From Pocillopora damicornis (Eukaryota), in NCBI RefSeq assembly GCF_003704095.1, contig NW_020845941.1:186001-250000 (forward strand): a stretch of DNA of 64,000 nt, given 5' to 3'. Positions 2,334 to 50,342 of this stretch are shown one piece after another. Each line of letters begins with the position of its first letter. Positions within the stretch are counted from its first letter, which is position 1. Under the pieces are notes generated by a model. It saw nothing but the letters and a program-made list of their open reading frames with translations. It was not told the origin of the DNA and did no database searches. Position numbers and translations under genes: made by a program.

Positions 2334-3726
2334 TTCACAGAAAGGAAATTTCTCAAGGGGCAATTTGAATGGGAAAAATTGTTGCTCAAAGAAGAGTCAT
2401 TTATCGGGGTAGCGAAACTCCGAGCTCTGCGGGTTTTCGCCCTGCGCTGGTCAATCGTTCCTCTGGTCTGTATCCTCTCTGTAAGGGGTTCTGAGAGTGC
2501 TGTAGGTTTTAAATATGAGCAGTTAGCTTTTAAAACTGCTTCAAGACGGATTAGTAGTTTGGCGTGAAAAACTAGCCATGACTTATTTCTCGGATTTCGA
2601 AAAAATTAAGAGGTTAATATTTTATTTAGCAATCGTATTCAGAGTTGTAGATATTTAACACATTACTATCATTTCCTATGGTTCAATACTCGTTTCCCCT
2701 GAAAATTTGTTTATGTTCACAATGGCTTAAGTATTTGCTGGTATTATTGGGAAAAGGCGAAGACTACCAAGTTCCTTAAGCTACAGCAAAAACCGATCGA
2801 ATTGATATGTCCAGATGTTAAGAGACTGCTAGATAATAAGGTGAAAATTAGTCAATTTTATAGACGGAAAAATTGGAAATATTGCGTTACTAATTTTATG
2901 CCAGGAAGAAGCCCATGACAATATTAGAATTCTTAGTTAATGATTGAAAAGAAATCTATAGCTAACAGTTTGAAATGATAGAAAAAAACACCAACGAGAC
3001 ATGACATAACCGATGGGGTATGAGGATTAAAAGACCTGTTTTTTGTTAGAGAAAGGAGGAAGGGAGAGGGACCGTGCAATATGGGGAAAGTCATTATATT
3101 TTATGCAACCCAAAAGCGCAGGGCCACAAATATTTAAGGGCTTTAGGGATGGCCATATCTCTTTTGGATCACATTAGGAGAAGGGTTACAGTTTTTTTCT
3201 GCAAGAAGTAATTTAAGGGATATAAAAAACTGGTGTGGAAAAAAAAAGAAGAAATCTCCCCCCTCCTTCCTCTCTCATCTCTAATAAATGACAGGCCCCT
3301 GCCTGATTAAATTGAAAATGACCGCAAAAGGGGAAATTTAACGAATCAGGAAGTATTTTCAACGCGAGTTATACTTCCAATCTTTAGCCCCTTGACTTTT
3401 GAGATCTGATTATTTATTCTTCTAACTTATGTTGTTACATCTCCTTGTTGGTTTGTCTAGAGAATCTGGTTTTATATCAAAACAATGTCTCTTAATATTA
3501 CCAATTTTTTATTTTATTTTCATGACCTGTCTGCTTAACTGTGTAGCCAAATTGTCAGGAGAAGATAAGCTGTGATCACTTGGTAGTAAAAAAGGTTACG
3601 TCAAATCGATATATCAGCGATACGATGGCTAAAAAATGAATCTTAGTTGAACTGAAATCAAAGAATGAGAAGTATATTTAAACTAGGAAGCTCTTGTGGC
3701 ATGGCCTGTGTAGGAGGAAAGTTATG

Positions 3727-22560: not shown

Positions 22561-23137
22561 TTTGACCTTTCCCATTGTTAATCTCCACTTTCATTGTTTT
22601 AAAACTATTTTCCCGTCATAAGTCACCTGGCTCTATTTTTACAAGTCTCCTCCAACAATAGAAGGAACTAAAAACTCCAAATAAAAAAAGTGCATTTCCT
22701 CAAATAAGTGCCCAGGCTTTTATTTAAAATTTTGGCTAAAAGGGAGGGTGCTCATTGGAAGGAGGGCATTTATTCAAGGAGGGTACTTATTAAATTAGCA
22801 CCGCAAGAGGAAAAAAAAGACAACTCACATTAAGGAACTCTTAAATAACATGATGATAGAAAGAACTGGAAGTGACTTAACATAAAAGAAATTATTCTCT
22901 TTTACTGATTCCCGCTGTAGTTGTAGCTTAAAAGTTATTAAGTGGTAAGGAAAACAGGTTTTCTGTGTGTCCTTGCTATTTAAAAAAATTGAGGGGGTGT
23001 GGTTCTTTTTTGACATTATGGCAGAGGGGTGAGCACTTATTAGAGTGTGGGCACTTATTCATGGAAATACAGACTACCAGTATGTGAATTATATTAATAA
23101 AGCTAATTTGAAATTTCTTAATATTTGACATAGCATT

Positions 23138-26100
23138 CTACTTGACTGTCACAACATGCACGGCTTGTCTAGTCAAGACAAAAATCCTATTATTAGATGC
23201 TTGGAGCCCAAGGATTTCATTGTCAGGAGTTGTCAATGTTACAACTTGTTGATTGGCATGTTTAGCACTCCCTACAGGTTGTTGGTAAACATAAACATGT
23301 CTTGTGTTGTCACATATCACAGCATAGGACAGATCTGGGGCACATGTGGAGAACTTGCGATCCCTTTTAGCAGCCTGGACATAACCTAAAGCATTAAATG
23401 TTCCGGTGTGAATCCAGTTAGCCTCACTGTCTGAGTGTGCCTTGGGCTGCCACACAAGGGCATCAACATCATGACGTATGCAGAAGGCAGGAGGAAGACT
23501 CTTATCAAGTGATGCATTGAAGATCCACTGATGACTTGCTAAACAAACCTGACAAGAAAAGAAGATTTGTCAGACATGTGCATCACCCATTACCATAGAT
23601 TCAAAGTAAACAGCCATGAACTTGAATGACCTTATCAAGGGAATTGGGTGGGCTCACAATCTAGACCACAAATAGATTACCTAGTTTAAAAGGGTTTTTA
23701 AAGAGCCTTTAGTGCTGCACCCAGGGTATTAAAAGATAATTAGGATTTATAAACTGAGTTGATAAATATAAATAGGCCACTGTGAAGAGTTTCTAAAGCT
23801 TGTGTTAGCACCCGCACACCATAAGCCCTTGATCAGAGCTTTCTAGTTTATTCTGAAGAAACATATTGCTTCATGGTAAAAGTGAAGCTGAGAGGAATTT
23901 CTCAAGATGTCCATTTTTGTCACTTGCTCTACACATAACCTTTGTGAGTCGGTAAAGAGTTCTGGAGGAGCTTACATCAAGTGGTTTGCAAATCATTTAT
24001 TAGATGATCTGATAGAAGGAGCCCTGTTAAAAAAAAAAATAACTACCAATACATACCTTGTGTGTTAATTCTCCAGTTTTAACATCCAACCGAAAAATAT
24101 ATTCAATATCCTCTGGGAAAGCATCACATTCTTCAAATTCGTCATTACTAAATGACATCTTAGTTGCCCGTGACTTTTCCACCTGGATTTCAAATATTGA
24201 TTGAAAAATTCAACATGATATCAATACTTTTGATGTTCACAATAAATTTTTTCTGCTAAAAATTGCTACATGAGATGAACTTAGCAACATAGGGATGTAA
24301 AACTGATTTTTTCCAAAATAATTGGCNNNNNNNNNNNNNNNNNNNNNNNNNNNNNNNNNNNNNNNNNNNNNNNNNNNNNNNNNNNNNNNNNNNNNNNNNN
24401 NNNNNNNNNNNNNNNNNNNNNNNNNNAATAAACTAATAAGAGCTCTGCTTTTAGGCTTGGCTAAATCTATATATTAAAATCCAAAGATTAAAATCCCTGT
24501 GGGCTGGACACAGATTTTTTAATTGTCTCCAAATTGTGAAAACATGAGTAACATCCTTTCTTTATTTATCAACAGAGCTAAACATTTACCATCTCTCCTT
24601 TTCTAGATACATGTACAATTAAAAGAAGTAGCAGTGTTCTCCCTTATTTTAAGCATGACAGGTAAAATAAATTTTCAAACCAGTAAAGCAATCCTTTTAC
24701 AAGTTGAATTTTCAAGAATTCCAAGCAATTTTAAACGGTAATAAGAGGTACTACAGGCAGTAAATGTTACCAGTTACTGCCTGAAAAGGAGAACACTGAG
24801 TAGTGTTAAGCATTATCAATTGCTAATGTCATTTCTCATTATTATGGAACAGTACATGTCACTTCCCAATGAGTGCAAGCCATTTTTAAGTCTTTTTGCT
24901 TGGCCGAGATGCTTAAGAGGGTTTCTTGTGATGCCAGTTGAATTCTAAACATAACTATTTTGTAACAGAGAAAGAAAAGGGGTAGAGAGAAAAGATACTT
25001 AAAAATAAAGACTGAAAACAAGTACTGCAAGTCACCTATTTTCCTCGACTGTCCATGTGCTTTCCTCTGAATTTACTTTTGCATAAAGAGGACCACTCAA
25101 CAAAATCTCTTTCCCAATTTGAAGGTCCACAGAATCTGCTGTTACATTACAAGCTATATCATCTTTCTTGGTGCCATCTGGTAGAACAAATTTTACAGTG
25201 ACGTCTTCACTATCCTGTGACCATTTGTATACTTTTACTGAAGAACTGTGGGACTTTACCTCAGCCATAACATCATCTGCAGAATGAAATGACCCTGATG
25301 GCTTTTCCTCACTGTCACCTATTCCAAAAAAAGAAAAAACAGGTCATGTCAGATAAAAAGGAACCTTCTCTATTTCCAAAATCTTCATTAAACTTAACCC
25401 TTGGACCCCTAAGAGCGACCAGCTTCTAATTTCTCCTAACAATATCAACTCTGAATCGTGCATTTAAGTGAGGAGAATAAAGGAAATAATCGCTAACTGA
25501 ATTAGCCTTTGATTTTTAAATGAACTCTCCTTGTCAGCTCCTTGGGAAATATACAGAAAGCAGTATGGAGATGATCATTATTCATACTGGTGATAGAGTA
25601 TTGACAAACAGATAAGGGAAGATGTTAACAATAATTGTGATCACTGCACAAATTACGTTCATTATGCCTCAAAGACAAGAAACTATATTTAGCTTCTAAA
25701 CAGAGTTCTATCGCTAAATTCAGATGCAGAGTTGTTATGTGGTATATTCCTTGTTAAACTACTCCAAAAAAATGTTAATCCCACAAATAAATAAGGTACC
25801 TTTCACCAGAGAAAATGGTCTTTCACTTGCCACCAAAATAGCTGTACCACCACACTCAATGCCAGCATACACTGGTGCACTGTGACCTCTGAACTGTTGC
25901 AGCATCTCGCAACTGTAACTTATGGAACCTGTGGCTGAGCAATTCACTTGTGAAAAGGTGATCAACTCCAAATGAACATTGTGAGCATCTTTCACTGACG
26001 TAGAAGCATCATTTTCCGTGATACTCAATAACAAGCAACTGACACATCCAGTTTCTGGGCTTTGAACAGCATGAAGGATCAAAGATGGCTGGTCAAACTG

Positions 26101-27069
26101 GTAAACTGAGCCTACCTTCCAACTTGTATTCTGAGAACAATCTCTTATTCTGTCACCTGTTTGCAGCAAGTAGAGTTTCCCACTTCCATCACACAAACAA
26201 GCCAGAGATTGTGAAGGAAGAAACAGTGTTGAGTTCAAGCTTTCTTCAGTTTTTTCTACTGCCGGTGTTTTGAATACTGTATCAATGGATGAAACATCTG
26301 TGTCCTTAAAATTATAAAGAGACACAAGTTAGATATTTTTTATCATTTTAAGTTGCATATTTAGATTTTCAATCCCTCTATGAGCATTCCAACCTTGTAT
26401 TAAAACAAAAGTAAATTAAATAAACATTTAATATTCAAACTATTGCACATTTTTTAAGTATAACTTCAAAATTTATTTCAATCGTTTTCCATGCCAATTT
26501 CAAAATCTCGGTAACAAAGGTTATGGGTCAAATCAGATCATCAAAATAAATAATCAAAACAGGACAATCTAGTTGACAACTTTGTCTGTTGTCATCGTCT
26601 GTCTGCTGAATCACTACTTAGAGTTCAAGAGTTAACTATTGGGAAAAGGTTCTGATGCTCCATCAAATTCTCCTTACCCACACGAGAGGAAACTGACAAA
26701 GAGCTTCACGTTTCACAAACGTTCAAGGAAACAATTTAACATTATTTTCACCTTTCGATGTTTTTCATCGTATCTCACGATTTTACTTATTGGTTCACTT
26801 ACTTTGACAACTGCCCTTTCAACTTCGTAGTTTTCATTAACGAAATAAACAACTTCAGTTTTCCCGCCATCAGTCCAAGAGTCAATCACCAGATGGTTAT
26901 GATTTCCAAAGGCTCGAATGTGTTGAAGGGAAAACGACTCCTCTCTGAGCGGTACATTATTCACTGAAGAAAGTAATCTAGTGGACGACAGTGTCAGGGG
27001 GTCCAAAGCTAGTTTATAACCTTCAAATTTTGGATTCAATAGTTGCCGATTTGGACGAAGAGACTCCAT
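23138..27069 (-). CDS. NUDCD1: NudC domain-containing protein 1
   Basis: MESLRPNRQLLNPKFEGYKLALDPL N-terminus, CS/p23 domain YKWSQDSEDVTVKF, EECD motif and C-terminal HTGTFNALGYVQAAKRDRKF. Exons about 27069-26803, 26304-25800, 25317-25035, 24182-24057 and 23548-23138. One exon is probably lost in gap 24327-24426. Confidence 0.9.
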
Positions 27070-28937
27070 CGTGATCTTCTCACCAGACTCTCACAGAGAT
27101 TTCGAACGAGGAGGCAGTCTGGGACGGTGACAAATTGCCAAATATCATGGAAGTGATATGGAGGTAGAAAGTTCAGGAAGAGCAAGGCGAAGATAAAAAT
27201 GGCATGAAAACGATCATACAATCTCTTTTAAATAACAAATAGTGTAGCTTAGTGGCTACTATATGTTGGATCTCTTTCTGAGGTGAAGGCCGTACCAAAA
27301 ATTTCTGTGACGTGCATGCGACGAATGAATTTCTAGCTGACACTCGACAAAGGGCACTTTTTAATGAGCCAATATCTCGACCGATAGCACAGCTGTATTA
27401 GTCTCCTTTCGAGCCTTTGTTACTGTCGACTGTCGATGTTAAGACGATGGAACTCGTTTGATATATTCATTCAAATTACGTAGTGCTAACCTTCGATTCA
27501 GCTCGTTCCTTTTCTCACTAAACGTTGGGGAGAAAAAATTTCTCAATGTACGTCGCTGAAGTGCCCGACGAATTCAGTAGAGCTTGATGGAAAACGAATG
27601 TGAAGAAGAAAACAACTTGAAAGGAAATTATCGCTTCTAAACTATTAAAATCTGGAGACTTGGCTATTGCCATACACTGTGAACACTGATAATTTGACAT
27701 TGTTTCTCATTTCACAGTCAAGAGTTCGCAGCATGATATAACGATTTTTGACACTCTAAAATTGTATGGTTGGTTAATTTATATTAAAGTTATGCTATGT
27801 TAGAAACAATAACGAATATTGCATCAGTTGTTTTAGTACAAGTGATTTATTTCAATCGGACTTGTTCGAATAATGTAGTCAAAGTAGTCAAAAGGGTTAT
27901 GACGTGCAGTGCAGTTCCTGTGGTCGCCGCACGAAAAATGAAAAATTAAAACTTTTCCTCTCAATGATAAGATCTCCTGAAAAACAAATATATTGATTCT
28001 TAGGGAAAAAAATGATAGTTAACAAGTGTGATATCGAGCACGATTAATTTAGCATTACCGGTAGTCTACTATCGTTAATTAAAATACTCGCGACGGCCCT
28101 CGTAAATAATTTCATACTACACTGCTCTCCGGAATGTAAAATCAGAGAAAAGTACACCAAAGAAACCTTATTTTTTTCCATCTGGTGTTCGAAATGATGG
28201 GTAAAAAAGTTATGAAAAGATGTCCTATCTCGACCAGCCGGTGTACAAACACCCCCTCCCCCCCCCACAAAAAAAAATCTGGGACGGGAAGGGGAGGAAA
28301 GGGGGCGGCTGCTATGCCAGAGCGAAATGCTCAAGATACTAGAGCGAATTTAATGAGCCGCACCCCTTCCGTTGCTATGATATGACACGTTCCAGATGAC
28401 ATAAATTTATTACGCCGCATGAGTTCAGTATCGCATAAATTCATCATAAGATGTCCTGTTGAGTATCGCAGCGGCAGACACCGTGACAACCTTCGTAGAG
28501 ACACAGAGTGAGAAATTGTAATAAGAGAATATCATACAATAATGTTTAAGTGCGGTTTATTGCGGTCTCCTCAAGAAAAACTGTTGTCACTAACGCCACT
28601 GAAATTTGCATTTTGCCTGTTCAAAGACATCATGTGTTACCGCAGCAGGATTTTTATTGGTTAAGCTTTTATTTAGCTTTGTCTTTCGCACAATAGCTTT
28701 CAGGTGTCGAGTTTTACCATGATCACCAATAAACACCATCAACAACATTCGATGGCTAGCCTTAATGACGTCACAAAAGCACTACTGTATATGGATGTGA
28801 GCCTATTGTTGACACACGAAGCCTCGCATAAATTAGTCGTTAAATAAAACCGCGCCACAATCTCCCCGACGACATTTTGCAAACTTGAAGACAAGGGAAA
28901 GTAGAACCTTCAACGTTCGCTGAAAAAATTTTCAAAG

Positions 28938-32403
<3,466 letters not shown>

Positions 32404-34454: not shown

Positions 34455-37217
<2,763 letters not shown>

Positions 37218-38718
37218 GAACTCCTCTTATTTCTTGAGATCGTTTCCACTGTAAAGGATATTACTTAAAGGGCTGTTATTAAAGTTTGATGTATTTTTGA
37301 ATTGCGTTTTTATGGTATTGATTCATCGAGGCAAAAGTAAATATAGTCCAATATATTTGAATTGGAAACAAATGTGCCAGGAAAGTTAAGAGCAGCTCTT
37401 CCGTAAAAGAAGAAACGAGATGTTTCGGTAGGACCTTAATGGCTGTGGAAAATTAAATTTTTGTATATTTGAGTGTAGTGTGATTTGCCAGATATTGCCG
37501 TTATTGTAACATGTGAAACTCTTAGAGAATCTGTATTTGTTAAAACTTAGTAGTGGCAATAGCACTGAAGAAAACATACGTTTTCGTGCGATATTAGAAT
37601 TTTCATGATTATGTCAAAAGCCTAGATATTGGGCTACTTTTTATCGATAAATGCCTGAAAACCTGAAAGTATAGGAAAATATTCCAGAAAAAGAGTCACT
37701 TTTTAATCTGTCGCGAGGAATGATGTGGATGACTCCAGTTGAACAGAGAGGAGCTGAAGATATCTTGCATAGTTCCAAACGTTTGCATTTCTGCGTTCGT
37801 ATGTTTTCAGGGATGGCTTTTCATCCTCTGAAGAGTTAACGAGACCCTTTTTTTCTCACATTTTTCTCTGATAAAAATTTTAATATTTGACAAAAAGAAG
37901 AAGACTGAGCTGAGGAAAGAAAAAAAGAACTGCCCATCCTTTCTCTTCAATAGCAGCGCGCGGTAGTTTGGACATCAGTCGCTCTCAATTTTCTGGACAC
38001 ACGGGCCGGGTCTTGACTTGCGCCTGAAATTTAGGAGAGTAAGCTCGCAATCAATTACGAGTCACTAAAGCAAGGAAGTCAAAAACGTTTTACAATAACA
38101 TCGACAGAATGAGAGTCGAGCCAATACACGGAATGAACGGAGGAATGCCAAGATTTGACTCAATTCGCGACTGACTGCAATATAATTTCATACGTCAGCA
38201 AAGTTGCCCGCAAAAATATAATATCACCCGCTGGTTTAAGGAAGGATGCACCCGAGTTGCTGAACTCTCCTAGTTAGAACCAGAATTTCCATTCGAGCTT
38301 TTGACAAAGGATGAGAGAACTTCTCGCGGAGAGTATTTTTTTCTCTTCTTTTATCACATTCTTCTTAAATATTTGAGTTGGTTTGACTTTGATTGAAAGG
38401 GGGAGCAGGAAAACAAAGTGTACATATGGTAGTGTAAGAGACCCGGGTGAAAACAACCAGCCGGAAGTGTCTAGGGCATGGAAACGAGGGTTTCGACAAA
38501 ATTCAACAAACCTACCGGTTTCTGGTTCCTGTTTTAGTTCACGCACAGATTTTGAAAGAACAGATAGAGGAAAACATTAATTATTGATATTATCGCACAA
38601 GACGCAGATTTATCAATAGTCCGGTCGAACGGGCTAGATAGAGGCTGATTTCCGACAACGAAATGAGCCCAAACTGTGGGTTCATGCGAGGGAAAGACGC
38701 CTCGTGCTTCTCAATGTA

Positions 38719-41700
38719 ATGCGGGAAATTATCAACGTCCAAGTCGGTCAGTGTGGAAACCAAATTGGTTACAAGGTGGTTTGGTGTTCTGGCACTAATT
38801 TGCGTGTTGCTACGAAATTTAAAGGGGCTTTATTTCTTTTGTCTGTGGTTTAATTTTACACTTCGTAATCCTAAATGTCCGCTCTTGTCGCAGCTTTGGG
38901 AAATCATTTGCTCTGAACATGGAATAGACGAAGAAGGACGCTACATAGGGAACTGTAATTCCCAGTTGGAGAAAATTGATGTTTATTTTGCTGAGGGTTC
39001 TGGTGAGTAGTGAATGGTAATTCTGTTATCAAAAACTTCTTATTAAGTTCCCTTATCGTGGCCAAGTCGAATTCGTACTGTGATGCATGCTGTAAAAGTC
39101 TGAATAGTGCTGTATTTAATTTTGAGTCTTTCATTTTTTCCGGGTAGAAAGTAGATATGTACCACGGTCTGTTCTTGTCGACTTGGAGTCAGGTACGATG
39201 GACTCGCTTCGCTCTGCGCCGTTTGGAAAAGTTTTCCGACCCGATAACTTTGTTTTCGGTAAGTTTGGTTTTCACTTTTACAACATGTGAGTAGATTGTG
39301 TAATTAACGGGAACTTCATCGAAGAGATAAAACATTTTTGAATCAATATTGCCCCTCTTATTCTTGCGTTATTAAAATTTGAGACTTCATCGACTACTTG
39401 AAGGAATAAGATCAAAATTAAATCACGCATTTATAACTTTCCACTATCTTCAGCTGTTTTGTGCGTTTAATTGCAGCTAACCTTTCTGTATTTCATGCCT
39501 TTCTGTGCGTGACCCAGCTGACGCAAGAAACTCATTCAGAATTGTCGAACGAAAACTCAGCGTATTATGATAAAACAAATATAATTTAGTTTATTTTGAG
39601 AAATTTGGTTATTTTTCACAGTAAACTTCATTTTATTCAATATTATACATACATTTCTTTCCGAAGTGAGAATGCAACGATCATGTTAGTCTCGTTTAAT
39701 TATTGCTTCCTAACCGGCATTGTTATTTTGCTATCGTTACTATTCCTAAAACGCCTACAGCCAAATTTTTTCGCAAATAGGCACATTTGACATTTCCTCT
39801 TCACTCAATTTTCTTGAAAAAACTACATAAACAAAAAGCGTTTAATAATCGCTTCAAATTAGCGGTTTTCTTACGGTACTTGTCTTTGTTTACCTGTCAA
39901 AATCTTCAGAGAAGAACGCTAATTTGTTTCTCATCCGCACCACTAGCTTTTTCAGAAAAGACGCAATTTGCATTTTGTTTTGCAACGCACGACATGTCGT
40001 CAAGAGCCCGCGAAGAACATGCTAGTATGTAGGGAAATTTATTAGACTTCACGACACCTTTTGTTGTACAGACTTTTTGAAAGAATATTTAATAATCTTG
40101 GGCATCCTTTAGAAAAAGGCCGATTTTAAAAGCTTCGTATCAATATTTCTTTTTCTCTATAGGATCAACTGCTTTGAGAAATTTAGTGCTTGCCAAATTT
40201 CAACACAAATCAGCTGTGGCTTAGACGCGCATGATACGGCCAATTGAACACAGATATTAAATACCCCGGAGTCTTGCCCCATCAATAAACTGTTGTTTAA
40301 TAACTTATTAACAAAGAAAAAGAAAAAGCTAATTGACCCAGCTGATCCAGATTTATTGAACGATGTCGGCATAAACCTTAGAGGCTGAAACAGTTGTCTT
40401 CTGCTTTTGGCAGCTTATCTTGCCAAACCAGTTTTTGGATATAGAAACAACAGGCACTAGCCAATCGGCAGAATAAAATTTTACACTCGTGTTAACAAAT
40501 CATGCATGCCTCTCGTTCAATGCCTTGCGAACCAAGGAAGAATTCAGTCATCCTTATCTTTAAAACTAATTATGGCCTCCATTTGACCCGTGGTTTGAGT
40601 ATTACGACCTCTTTCATTGTGCTGTTTGTACGATTTCCAGTTTCAAAGCTCTGTTAGAGAAGATATATTTAGATTGTATAACACAACGCCTTTTTTCACA
40701 AATATATTCCAAGCCATTTCGCGTTACAATTGTGACACTGTTAAACGGGCCCAGTTGATTATTTCTGAGCTTCCTTTCGTTATTACTGACCTAACAGTAA
40801 GCAGGACGTTTTTCATGAAAGCGTGGTGAAAGTGGGAATACCCCGTCAAACTATGTTCAATGTAGCTCAGTGGTAGAGCGTCGGGCCGTGAAATCCCAAG
40901 GTCTACGGCTCGATTCCTCGTAGGGGGGCTCAGAATTTTCTGTTTTCCTTTTTTCCCACGCTCGTTACAAAAATGACATCAAAATTAATCGTATCTCAAA
41001 TGAGATGAGTAACNNNNNNNNNNNNNNNNNNNNNNNNNNNNNNNNNNNNNNNNNNNNNNNNNNNNNNNNNNNNNNNNNNNNNNNNNNNNNNNNNNNNNNN
41101 NNNNNNNNNNNNNNNNNNNNNNNNNNNNNNNNNNNNNNNNNNNNNNNNNNNNNNNNNNNNNNNNNNNNNNNNNNNNNNNNNNNNNNNNNNNNNNNNNNNN
41201 NNNNNNNNNNNNNNNNNNNNNNNNNNNNNNNNNNNNNNNNNNNNNNNNNNNNNNNNNNNNNNNNNNNNNNNNNNNNNNNNNNNNNNNNNNNNNNNNNNNN
41301 NNNNNNNNNNNNNNNNNNNNNNNNNNNNNNNNNNNNNNNNNNNNNNNNNNNNNNNNNNNNNNNNNNNNNNNNNNNNNNNNNNNNNNNNNNNNNNNNNNNN
41401 NNNNNNNNNNNNNNNNNNNNNNNNNNNNNNNNNNNNNNNNNNNNNNNNNNNNNNNNNNNNNNNNNNNNNNNNNNNNNNNNNNNNNNNNNNNNNNNNNNNN
41501 NNNNNNNNNNNNNNNNNNNNNNNNNNNNNNNNNNNNNNNNNNNNNNNNNNNNNNNNNNNNNNNNNNNNNNNNNNNNNNNNNNNNNNNNNNNNNNNNNNNN
41601 NNNNNNNNNNNNNNNNNNNNNNNNNNNNNNNNNNNNNNNNNNNNNNNNNNNNNNNNNNNNNNNNNNNNNNNNNNNNNCCTCCCCCGGCGATAAATAATGA

Positions 41701-44348
41701 CCGATCCCTTAACCCTTTAACTCCTATGAGTGACCAAGACAGAATTTCTCCGTACAACATCAATACAATATCAACCAGATAAGAGATGAGAATAAATAAA
41801 AATATCAATTAGGGGATTATAAATTGATGCAATACCGAATTCTCCAAACTAACATCACAAGAACTGTGTAGTAGACAGTAAGGAGAATTACTAATGAGAT
41901 CTTGGGAGTTAAAGTATTAATGTAAGTAGTTCGTATAGTGAAGTGCCCCACACACCGTTTATCCCCAGAGTAGACAGAGTATACAGAAACCTAAAGTTAA
42001 TTTTTTTTAACACAGGGGAATGTGGAGCAGGAAATAACTGGGCGAAAGGTTTTTACACAAATGGATGCAATCTCTTGGAAGAGGTCTTGGACGCGGTGCG
42101 AAAAGAAGCCGAGGGATGTGACTCGATCCAGGGCTTCCAAATTGCCCATTCCCTGGGCGGCGGCACGGGATCTGGGCTCGGTACTCTGATACTTTACCAT
42201 CTACAAGAGGAATATCCAGATCGCATTCTGAGCGCCATCAGTGTTTTTCCTTCGCCGAAAGTTTCTGAGATTGTTATTGAACCTTATAATGCCACTCTAG
42301 CTGTTCACCAGCTGATTGAGACCACTGATGAAGTGTTCTCGTTTGATAATGAAGCGCTTTACGATATTTGTTTTAGGACGCTTAAACTTGGCACCACAAC
42401 GTACTCGGATCTGAATCATATCATATCGACGACCATGAGTGGGGTTACCACCTGTCTTCGTTTTCCCGGACAGGTGAGTTCAAGGTGTAAAGAGGTCCTT
42501 CAAATAGAGCAAGTCAGGTTCCCTTAAGTGTCAAAAGTAGTCCGGGATTGAATTGCTAGTTTTTTTTTACTACGTTCTGTGATTGGTAAAGAATACTAAC
42601 TCCACCTTCTCAACCAGTCAGTCACACCATATTAAAATAATGGCTACCCATGACTGGATTGTTACCTTGCTCGTTCACATATATTTGCTTTGGATTCTCG
42701 CCAGCTTCACCATGCGAAGTTCACCCTAGCTCTGATCGGTCTTTGTAATTACTTTGATCAAGGAGTGCTTTGCGGTAGAGTGAAGTAAAACCAAACCAAA
42801 ATTATCGTACTGTGTAAATCACACGGAACCAATGAGAACTTACATAAACCTCCTGCGGCCCCTAGAGCGTGAGTTGTCTGGTCGCAGATGGTTTTAATTT
42901 CGTTCTGATTGATTGAGAAAGTGACTTGAATGTTATTGATCAATTAATTGGTAGAGTGGAGCAAAACTGACGCAATGACGTAATGCAAAAGAAATTTTAA
43001 TCCTCACAGTGCGTCTCCCTTGAATTCAGGTTGTGGAATAAGCCTAACTCGACTTGTTTTTCTAGTTGAACGCGGACATGCGCAAATTGGCCGTGAACAT
43101 GATTCCTTATCCACGCCTTCATTTCTTTATGCCTGGCTTCGCACCGCTGACCAGCAGGCAGTCACAGATTTTCCGCAATCTGACAGTTAGTGAACTGACA
43201 CAGCAAATTTTTGACGCTAAGAACATCATGATTGCATGTGATCCTAGAAATGGTAGATACCTTACCTATGCCGCTATGTTTCGCGGCAAAAAGTTATCAA
43301 TGAAGGAAGTTGAAGACCAAATGAAAAGCGTTCAGGACAAGAACTGCGGACATTTTGTGGAGTGGATTCCACATAATGCTAAAGTTGCGGTTTGCAATGT
43401 TCCTCCACACGGAATGAAAATGTCGGCCACATTCATCGCGAATAACACAGCTATACAAGAACTTTTTAAACGACTCAATCTGCAGTTTAAGGTTATGTAT
43501 CGCAGGAGAGCATTTTTGCATTGGTTCACTGAGGAGGGAATGGACGAGATGCAATTTAAACAGGTGAGAAATTTTTTCTTGATTAAATTGCTATCGCTGA
43601 TGTGTTGGGAATATTTTTGAGTTACCGTTCCGAGGGGGGAAAATATTGCAGGGACACTCTCTGTGGTCGGAACATCTCTATTTAGGGACACATTTCTTCT
43701 GGCTTTGGGTGTGTCACGAATGAAGGTTCCATTTTACTATCACCGTCATCGAAGGGACATTCTATAAAGAGGGCACTTTTTCTAATCCTGAGTGTGTCCT
43801 GATTGGAGTTTTCGTTTCATCTGTTACCTAATTAAGGAGATACTCCACGTTTAGGTAACACTTTTATGAGTCCCGAAGAGACGCTCTACTGTAATTTAGA
43901 GGTCTGGATAAATTTTGCACTTTGAACAAAAAGCGCAACTTTTGTCCCCTTAAGGACGGTCACATGGACTTTTCCCTTTCCCTAGGAAGAGCTTAACCAG
44001 TGGAAGGTGTGGTTACATATTGATTATTGCGTTCAGCTGATTTGTATGAGCAAGAGATACTCGAAACTGCTTCATGTTTTTGATGCATGATTAAGATTTT
44101 GAAGAATGGACGGACTTGCTTTTGAATTTCTTCAATGTCGCTTTTTCTCTTTGCAGGCGGAGTCTTGTATGTTGGACGTAATTTCTACGTATCAACAATG
44201 TCAGGATCTTAAAGTCGATACAAGTCTTGATAACTTAGAAATTACGGACTTAGAAGAGTTTGAGGATTCTCTCGAATCATGGGACTGTTTAGATGGTCAC
44301 GTGAACGGTCGCGCGAACAATTTGCCTCTCGTGACAGCCGGTCAGTGA
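38719..44348 (+). CDS. Divergent beta-tubulin, copy 3 (7 exons, intact frame)
   Basis: Exons start at about 38719, 38894, 39148, 42016, 43066 and 44157, at the same intron positions as the neighbours. [36 protein letters not shown] and [17 protein letters not shown] (beta-type Lys). Atypical tail. No frameshift or premature stop seen. Confidence 0.9.
40860..40985 (+). mobile_element. tRNA-headed SINE
   Basis: TAGCTCAGTGGTAGAGC (A box) and GGCTCGATTCC (B box) followed by a non-tRNA body. No good cloverleaf. Confidence 0.6.
41709..41920. mobile_element. TTAA-MITE copy
   Basis: TTAACCCTTTAACTCCTATGAGTGACCAAGACAGAATTTCTCC...GATCTTGGGAGTTAAAGTATTAA. Other diverged copies are near 1220, 3385, 13190, 16340, 19445, 21880, 25395, 48380, 52385 and 63720. 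Confidence 0.75.
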
Positions 44349-45315
44349 CTGTTTGACCAATAAAGATTGCTTTGGTTTGCCTTATTTTTGCATTTAAGGC
44401 ATGAGGCGCCATATTTGGCGTTCATGACAACCGTAGTATTTGGCGTTTATGAGTAACGTAATATTTCCTGTTCGATCACACTAGTTTAACAAATAAATAA
44501 AATCTTTTTCATATAAGTGCTCTTTCTATTTGTTATAATTTATCTATAACTTTAAGTTCTCATTTCAAGACCCGTGTCGAACCATTGATCCACCCCTGAT
44601 GAATCTTGAAAACTACCGAAAAGGTTCGTGATCTTTGGAGGATATCGGTAGCAAAAAAAACTACAACACAACTGCATCTGTATTTCAGATGGCAAGAGAC
44701 AAGCCGACGTGACTCAGACCGCGCGGAAGGAAGATTGTGAATGGGGGGGGAGGGGAGAGAAGGGGCTGTAGTCCCTTCCATTCTCACGCACCGATGTCAT
44801 TGACAATCAAAAAGTTAGAAAACTATTCCATGAAAATTTGATGCAAAAAAATTTGCAGCTGCCACAACTAACAGAGGTAGAGAGTGACACGATTTTCAGT
44901 TCTGGATTGTGTTTGTTTAATTCGTAATGTAGCGTGATATACAACAGGATGCACTGATAGTACTTTCCGTTTTCGCGCACCCTCAGATAATTTAGGGCTC
45001 CACCATTACATGTTGTAAATCAGTTGCGAAAAAAACTTTCAAGATTGGAACAATAGGCTGTCATTGTATCAAACTTATCATCCAATATGAGTTCTTCAAC
45101 TTACACGGCTACAACTGGTCCAAGAATTGTTATTTCTTTTCTTCAAATTCTAGAACATTAATTTTTCCAATCACACTTTTGTTTCAAAACCCTATATTCA
45201 GCGGGGGTTCGAGAACTCCTTCCACCAGCGGCTGTCAGTAGTGTGATGATGGCTGTGCCCGAAAAGGGACCGAGAGCCTGCCTGGAGGCTAAGCAGACGG
45301 CTAAAGATGTCTTAG

Positions 45316-47256: not shown

Positions 47257-50342
<3,086 letters not shown>

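Follow-up and report, generated by a model that had tools for sequence, protein, structure and literature searches.

Some beta-tubulin isotypes are known to depart from the canonical sequence. No other isotype of its lineage is as divergent as vertebrate class VI beta-tubulin, TUBB1, which carries an unusual tail, serves a single cell lineage, and builds a special bundled array, the marginal band of platelets. Drosophila beta-2 and beta-3 tubulin and C. elegans MEC-7 show that an isotype can determine the kind of array that is built: axoneme competence or protofilament number depends on their isotype-specific residues and tail motifs. The beta-like tubulins (BLTs) of Tetrahymena, BLT1 and BLT4, are divergent, with substitutions both in interaction surfaces and in motifs that target microtubules; they are kept out of cilia and occupy nuclear and spindle arrays (PMC3382179). 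Here we describe a divergent beta-tubulin gene of the coral Pocillopora damicornis, located at 38719-44348 of a 64,000-nucleotide stretch that we call the window (positions 186,001 to 250,000 of the forward strand of contig NW_020845941.1, assembly GCF_003704095.1). The gene is intact, transcribed, and conserved, and is not a decaying copy. We suspect, with a probability of roughly 0.7, that it encodes a functional, lineage-specific isotype, the subunit of a dedicated and probably non-axonemal microtubule array with its own repertoire of motors and microtubule-associated proteins (MAPs) and possibly with lattice properties of its own. The parts of the gene are as follows.

38719-44348, plus strand: divergent beta-tubulin gene, six exons and five introns.
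38719..38775, plus strand: exon 1, amino acids 1-19, with MREI and the T1 loop GQCGNQIG; RNA joint 38775^38894 in 4 runs.
38894..39002, plus strand: exon 2, amino acids 20-56, ending on the first base of codon 56; RNA joint 39002^39148 in 4 runs.
39148..39258, plus strand: exon 3, amino acids 56-93, ending on the first base of codon 93; RNA joint 39258^42016 in 4 runs.
39259..42015, plus strand: intron 3, 2757 nucleotides as assembled, with an N gap, a repeat, and a tRNA-like fragment inside.
42016..42473, plus strand: exon 4, amino acids 93-245, with T3, T4 (GGGTGSG), H4, T5, and H7; Pfam domain PF00091.
43066..43563, plus strand: exon 5, amino acids 246-411, with T7/H8 and its beta-type Lys; Pfam domain PF03953.
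Within exon 5, plus strand: M-loop, 43153-43176; insert FRGKKLS, 43279-43299; PPHGM, 43402-43416; start of helix H12, 43546-43563.
44157..44348, plus strand: exon 6, with the remainder of H12 (44157-44192), the tail (amino acids 424-474, 44193-44345), its core motif (44247-44291), and the stop codon.

Rebuilt from the raw sequence, the coding sequence is 1425 nucleotides long and specifies 474 amino acids without an internal stop. All five introns have GT..AG ends, and their positions and phases are identical (5/5) to those of two neighboring canonical genes, copies A and B. An earlier sequence-only reading of this stretch had described an intact frame and six intron positions matching the neighbors; the frame and the match are as described, but the six are exons, separated by five introns. 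The N gap (41014-41677) lies entirely within intron 3 and touches no exon. A Gly codon, G|GG, is split over exons 3 and 4, and since the in-frame product is collinear with canonical beta-tubulin, no residue is missing at the gap. Nor is a hidden exon expected there, because the orthologous intron 3 has a similar length, 2380-3014 nucleotides, on three gap-free contigs (L013-L015, introduced below).

Transcription was assessed with Logan contigs from four RNA-seq runs of four studies, aligned to 38650-44450. All five splice joints, with GT..AG ends, are seen in every run, among them the 2757-nucleotide skip from 39258 to 42016 across the N gap; one contig of 1725 nucleotides (run X9) spans all six exons, and the word depth of the exons is several-fold greater than that of the introns in each run. 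The product of a 1592-nucleotide Logan transcript (P0122), which represents a cluster of 97 member sequences, is 99.4% identical to our model over all 474 residues, and a second transcript-derived protein (P0342) differs from it at one residue. Exon 6, which encodes the tail, occurs once in the genome. The sequence-only reading had named a lack of transcripts as a sign of a pseudogene; what we find is spliced RNA in each of the four studies.

By every sequence criterion, the product of the gene is classed as a beta-tubulin. Pfam Tubulin (PF00091) is recognized on exon 4 (E = 7e-38) and Tubulin_C (PF03953) on exon 5 (E = 6e-42), and the best matches in the PDB are beta-tubulin chains (beta-2A/2B, E about 1e-217). 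The MREI start (amino acids 1-4), GQCGNQIG (10-17), GGGTGSG (140-146), and the beta-type Lys segment (246-256) can be read directly in the 474-residue model, as the sequence-only reading held for MREI, GGGTGSG, and the Lys. The guanosine triphosphate (GTP) loops T1 (GQCGNQ), T3 (GAGNNW), T4 (GGGTGSG), T6, and T7 are kept here and across the clade described below. The marks that separate beta- from alpha-tubulin are present: the MREI start, a Lys in the place of the catalytic Glu of alpha-tubulin in T7/H8, and the absence of the alpha-type S9-S10 insertion, the protein being collinear with beta chains through S9-S10. The short Glu-rich tail of the family, which ends in EGEF in axonemal isotypes, is absent, but since that tail varies among beta-tubulins, membership stands. 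In the ESM Atlas the whole protein retrieved only generic "tubulin beta" clusters, and the tail alone only unnamed clusters.

Orthologues were sought exon by exon, then with the exon-5 part of one of the hits (P0009), and then with the full-length P0122. Matches to exon 5 were graded from 99% down to 77%, all above canonical tubulin (about 72%). The P0009 and P0122 queries yielded named full-length orthologues from Porites lutea, Acropora cervicornis, Actinostola sp., and Nematostella vectensis (XP_032231891.2 / A7SJX8), and cluster look-ups added those of Stylophora pistillata (XP_022779496.1), Pocillopora meandrina, Orbicella faveolata (XP_020602908.1), Oculina patagonica, Porites lobata, Desmophyllum pertusum, three further Acropora species, and Actinia tenebrosa (XP_031560286.1). 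Named intact orthologues come from 8 genera (Stylophora, Orbicella, Oculina, Porites, Acropora, Actinia, Actinostola, and Nematostella). Complete orthologous genes, with the same six exons and an intact frame, are also present on three long ENA metagenome contigs, L013, L014, and L015. In all, no fewer than 13 hexacoral species or contigs have the gene in intact form. Identity to the divergent protein is 99.8% in P. meandrina, 96.6% in Stylophora, and 73% in Nematostella. All of these sequences bear automatic names only, such as "tubulin beta chain-like." Individual gene models show some irregularities: the L014 orthologue has a GC donor at intron 1 (L014:1809/1810), its remaining introns being GT-AG; a 550-residue model of P. 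meandrina (P0337, CAH3032175.1) carries surplus N-terminal sequence and extends into intron 1; and isoform X2 of Porites lutea (P0121) is without exon 3.

In a maximum-likelihood tree of 34 beta-tubulins (LG+C20+F+G4), from which TUBB1 and MEC-7 were left out, the eight divergent sequences form one clade with support of 100/100 on a stem of 0.53 substitutions per site. Within it, L015 and the stony corals group together, with the sea anemones as their sister lineage, as in the species tree. No bilaterian row of the 34-sequence tree, vertebrate beta-3 and the Drosophila beta-97EF type included, falls inside the clade, so the gene stands outside the isotype clades sampled in that tree, one of which the sequence-only reading had allowed might hold it. 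The stem is long, and the attachment of the clade among metazoan beta-tubulins has no more than 84/82 support.

The divergent gene is under strong purifying selection. Pairwise ratios of nonsynonymous to synonymous substitution (dN/dS; Nei-Gojobori and YN00) within the clade are 0.04-0.05 for the whole gene at dS of 0.9-2.4, 0.03-0.04 for the body alone, and 0.11-0.15 for the tail alone; since dS is saturated for L015, the most distant orthologue, pairs with it are given no ratio. The canonical neighbors give 0.005-0.012, with the exception of one recent paralogue pair within L015 (0.03). The check proposed by the sequence-only reading therefore returned intact orthologues, a clade with 100/100 support, and a dN/dS of 0.04-0.05, far from the value near 1 that it associated with decay, and the specialized isotype it put forward is borne out to the extent that the gene is transcribed, correctly spliced, under purifying selection, and set in a clade of its own.

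To characterize the divergence, we compared 13 clade members with 20 canonical sequences, counting a position as fixed when each group has a different residue in at least 85% of its members; the assignment of residues to structural elements follows published tubulin structures. Thirty-three positions are fixed differently, with clusters in the H1-S2 loop, H3, H4, T5, H8-S7, and H11-H12. From the N-terminus, the differences are H6N and S25C; D41N, R46K, and A54G in the H1-S2 loop; H105F, E108N, and E111N at the T3/H3 junction; M147L, L151I, I152L, S153Y, K154H, and R156Q in H4; M164L; D177E and T178I in T5; S188A, N195T, P220T, V229I, V258I, F260Y, D327E, V349A, I356V, G369A, K392R, Y398F, G400E, E407Q, V419I, and Y425C. 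Lateral contacts between protofilaments are formed by the M-loop, the H1-S2 loop, and H3, and T5 sits at the longitudinal interface. The M-loop of the Pocillopora protein reads SRQSQIFR (canonical SRGSQQYR) and its S9-S10 loop PPHGM (canonical PPRGL); the one-residue insert in FRGKKLS is limited to stony corals.

Helix H12 of beta-tubulin contacts kinesin through E410, D417, and E421. Throughout the clade H12 has E407Q and has lost E421, which is replaced by Thr, or by Arg in Acropora; D417 is kept as D or E, and T409K and N414C are confined to the Pocilloporidae. The net charge of the helix is -6 in canonical beta-tubulin, -2 in the divergent Pocillopora protein, and -3 to -4 in L013-L015. 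The sequence-only reading reported the H12, M-loop, PPHGM, and FRGKKLS changes, all of which are found in Pocillopora as it described them. Its "neutralised" helix goes too far: charge is lost (-6 to -2), yet the helix remains acidic, more so in L013-L015. Of the kinesin-contacting acids it listed, the loss of E421 extends to the whole clade and E410Q does not, with D417 retained, as it had also noted. It further counted 14 Cys against 8 in the canonical copies; the divergent protein does have 14, and 8 is the number in copy B, copy A having 9. Among the additional Cys, C25 and C425 are conserved in 13/13 clade members, C110 in 11/13, C95 and the tail Cys in 9/13, and C338 in 8/13, and the canonical C129 is lost in every member. 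The disulfide stabilization it suggested is doubtful for a cytosolic protein, and only part of the Cys excess is conserved.

The most conserved novelty of the clade, which the sequence-only reading did not mention, is a replaced C-terminal tail. Following YQQC, the tail is 38-49 residues long across the clade and 48 in the window protein, compared with approximately 20 in canonical beta-tubulin, and its motif is kept in 13/13 clade sequences. The tail is amphipathic, with regularly spaced hydrophobic residues, no run of Glu longer than two, and no EGEF; in other beta-tubulins, axonemal use, polyglutamylation, and glycylation are associated with EGEF and with a Glu-rich tail. As a pattern match only, the acidic run of the clade's tail followed by E-x-W-[DE]-x-[LV] resembles an Atg8/LC3-interacting (LIR) motif. 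Stony-coral tails have, beyond this W motif, the pattern C-x-x-x-H-x-x-G-H (44283-44318, amino acids 454-465), in the place of which sea anemones are without the Cys and His; a metal site there is conceivable from the residue pattern. The most distant tail match, P0361, lies on a 2022-nucleotide contig (L024, Logan SRR23916682) with an odd exon arrangement, its tail variant (...DLEDSLETWENWDSLE...) standing about 230 nucleotides after a piece that reads IPYPRLHFF.

The gene stands among canonical copies, as the sequence-only reading proposed: copies A and B are canonical and a third, copy D, is of canonical type.

23126..27076, strand not assigned: CS-domain gene, flanking the tubulin cluster and syntenic with Actinia and Nematostella.
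28938..32403, plus strand: canonical beta-tubulin copy A, 448 amino acids, with the same 5 intron positions.
34473..37217, plus strand: canonical beta-tubulin copy B, 446 amino acids.
47290..50342, minus strand: canonical-type beta-tubulin copy D, its exon 5 broken by a 100-N run (48119-48218).

Copy B has 95.5% identity to an insect beta-1 tubulin and 90% to a green-alga beta-tubulin, but only 68% to the divergent protein. The order of genes (CS-domain gene, canonical, divergent, and canonical tubulin) is common to Pocillopora, Actinia, and Nematostella, and L013 and L015 also have flanking canonical beta-tubulins. An adh_short pair comes after the cluster in Actinia, and adh_short genes lie downstream in L014 and L015; these are absent from the window. 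Elsewhere in the genome, a second divergent beta-tubulin (G000:C2740, approximately 205000-208900, minus strand; L005/L020) has 62-67% identity to canonical beta-tubulin and a terminal branch of 1.08; it falls outside the hexacoral clade and is unrelated to it. A divergent alpha-tubulin (G000:C3284, at approximately 265.8 kb, minus strand; L008) has a 382-residue open frame ending ...EKDYEEVETAQPDNDDDDY, and it is conceivable that this is the partner of the divergent beta-tubulin. Within intron 3 of the divergent gene, a repeat directly after the gap (approximately 41680-41950) has an RNA word depth of 20,000-76,000 and many loose ends in 4/4 runs, and is probably an abundant transcribed transposon or short interspersed nuclear element (SINE) family. 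A tRNA-like stretch at 40862-40930 (GTAGCTCAGTGGTAGAGCG...) is probably a tRNA-derived SINE fragment; ARAGORN and Rfam scans of the divergent gene, this stretch included, made no calls.

Synteny and the shared intron positions point to an old tandem duplication within the beta-tubulin cluster, which would have preceded the split between sea anemones and stony corals and been followed by one burst of rapid change and then by long stasis. With its nucleotide loops and the majority of its contact residues intact, the protein appears to have the complete machinery for GTP binding and heterodimer formation, and it should pair with alpha-tubulin and enter microtubules. Such microtubules would present an altered outer face. 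On H12 there would be fewer acidic charges, owing to E407Q and the loss of E421 everywhere and to E410Q in stony corals, and the poly-Glu tail with EGEF, the usual substrate of glutamylation and glycylation, would give way to an amphipathic acidic tail with a conserved, docking-type motif. The lateral contact is changed on both of its sides, the M-loop on one and the H1-S2 loop with the start of H3 on the other, and T5 is changed at the longitudinal contact as well, so the stability or geometry of the lattice is probably tuned too. The outer ridge and tail are what kinesins, dynein, MAPs, and tail-modifying enzymes read; their alteration, together with the lateral and T5 changes, is what suggests to us a dedicated array, one that motors, MAPs, and tail-modifying enzymes would read differently in some particular cell type.

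Several observations weigh against this proposal. The net charge of the tail, -10 to -14, is close to the canonical -12, and the electrostatic pull on motors and MAPs may consequently change less than H12 suggests. E410Q is found only in stony corals and L015, three sea anemones retaining E410. The M-loop is not constant inside the clade, and relaxed constraint there would account for this no less well than tuning. AlphaFold2, run on a 26-sequence alignment of low diversity, gave a mean predicted local distance difference test score (pLDDT) of 44, too low for a usable model. Finally, the RNA runs are whole-colony or holobiont libraries seen as contigs, which carry no information on expression level, cell type, or strand.

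The protein could instead be a regulator or adaptor with a tubulin fold and not mainly a lattice subunit, acting by capping or poisoning microtubule ends, by sequestering alpha-tubulin, or as a scaffold through its tail. A stem of 0.53 substitutions per site is long, both types of interface are substituted (D177E/T178I in T5; the M-loop, H1-S2 loop, and H3), and the tail is a conserved linear motif and not a low-complexity acidic stretch, all of which such a protein might show. We nevertheless consider it unlikely. Every nucleotide-binding loop and the majority of the interface residues are retained, the body as a whole is still 68% identical to canonical beta-tubulin, and a body dN/dS of 0.03-0.04 is what a protein engaged in many simultaneous contacts, such as a lattice subunit, typically shows. 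The Tetrahymena BLTs are an example of divergent beta isotypes that do become part of microtubules (PMC3382179).

Tubulin isotypes can in many cases substitute for one another to a large extent, and the M-loop and parts of the tail end differ between lineages, as would be expected if the gene encoded an ordinary, redundant isotype whose differences were frozen from a period of relaxed selection after duplication and in which only expression had been subfunctionalized. That account has difficulty with the 33 diagnostic positions and the tail motif, conserved since the anemone and stony coral lineages separated, with the low dN/dS that extends to the tail (0.11-0.15), and with the failure of the adjoining canonical copies to convert the divergent gene; on balance we find it improbable. 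A decaying pseudogene, or an assembly artifact with exons misjoined over the N gap, which a gap within the gene and strong divergence from its neighbors might have suggested, is extremely improbable and in our judgment refuted by the intact frame, the GT-AG introns, a dN/dS of 0.04-0.05, RNA contigs of four studies that join exons 3 and 4 over the gap, and gap-free orthologues of the same structure with an intron 3 of 2.4-3.0 kb.

A narrower version of the dedicated-array proposal can be sketched. The isotype might be exclusive to Hexacorallia and mark a lineage-specific array, for example the cage of the developing spirocyst or cnidocyst, with the tail as docking site for a dedicated partner; we offer this tentatively, as a long shot built on sequence features. 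In that case the clade would represent a "tubulin code" that is genetically hard-wired instead of written by tail modification. Spirocysts are a capsule type found only in Hexacorallia. Word searches, and an exon-6 search of a representative library clustered at 50% identity, gave no octocoral or medusozoan orthologue among the matches listed; the exon-6 search returned only exon-sized open reading frames of the same clade and acidic-repeat noise, and at 50% clustering it is a weak guide to restriction. Restriction to Hexacorallia is for these reasons only a lead. In the Stylophora cell-atlas supplements that were searched, the gene identifier was not found.

Few eukaryotic proteins are as conserved as beta-tubulin, yet a copy with 68% identity has been kept beside a neighbor that is 95.5% identical to its insect counterpart. 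The clade is a natural experiment in the "tubulin code," in which the motor- and MAP-binding face of H12 and the whole tail were rewritten once and then frozen. Nematostella would be a tractable system for asking whether the sequence of an isotype is enough by itself to specify a microtubule array, and in corals the gene could serve as a cell-type marker. A distinct orthogroup lies hidden under the automatic name "tubulin beta chain-like." In the part of the literature open to searching by orthologue accession, by NCBI product name, or by topic (cnidocyte, spirocyte, Nematostella isotypes), no paper on the hexacoral clade was found; the orthogroup is annotated but uncharacterized, and what distinguishes it from ordinary isotypes is the conserved rewriting of its tail and H12.

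How, then, does this protein compare with those already described? With canonical metazoan beta-tubulins (copies A, B, and D; vertebrate TUBB classes I-IV) it shares the Pfam domains, the five intron positions, MREI, T1-T7, and the Lys; it differs at the 33 fixed positions, in an H12 charge of -2 to -4 in the hexacoral proteins versus -6, and in the replacement of the EGEF/poly-Glu tail by a long, conserved, amphipathic one. Drosophila beta-2 and beta-3 and MEC-7 are far closer to the canonical sequence and keep acidic, Glu-rich tails, and the Drosophila and Musca rows of our tree lie outside the hexacoral clade. In function its closest analogues are TUBB1, the class VI beta-1 tubulin of vertebrates, and the BLTs of Tetrahymena, neither of which is orthologous. 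The resemblance to TUBB1 is one of concept only, the hexacoral clade standing apart from every bilaterian row of a tree in which TUBB1 was not included. The Tetrahymena BLTs have an independent, ciliate origin, and their GTP-binding sites are changed, whereas those of the coral protein are kept.

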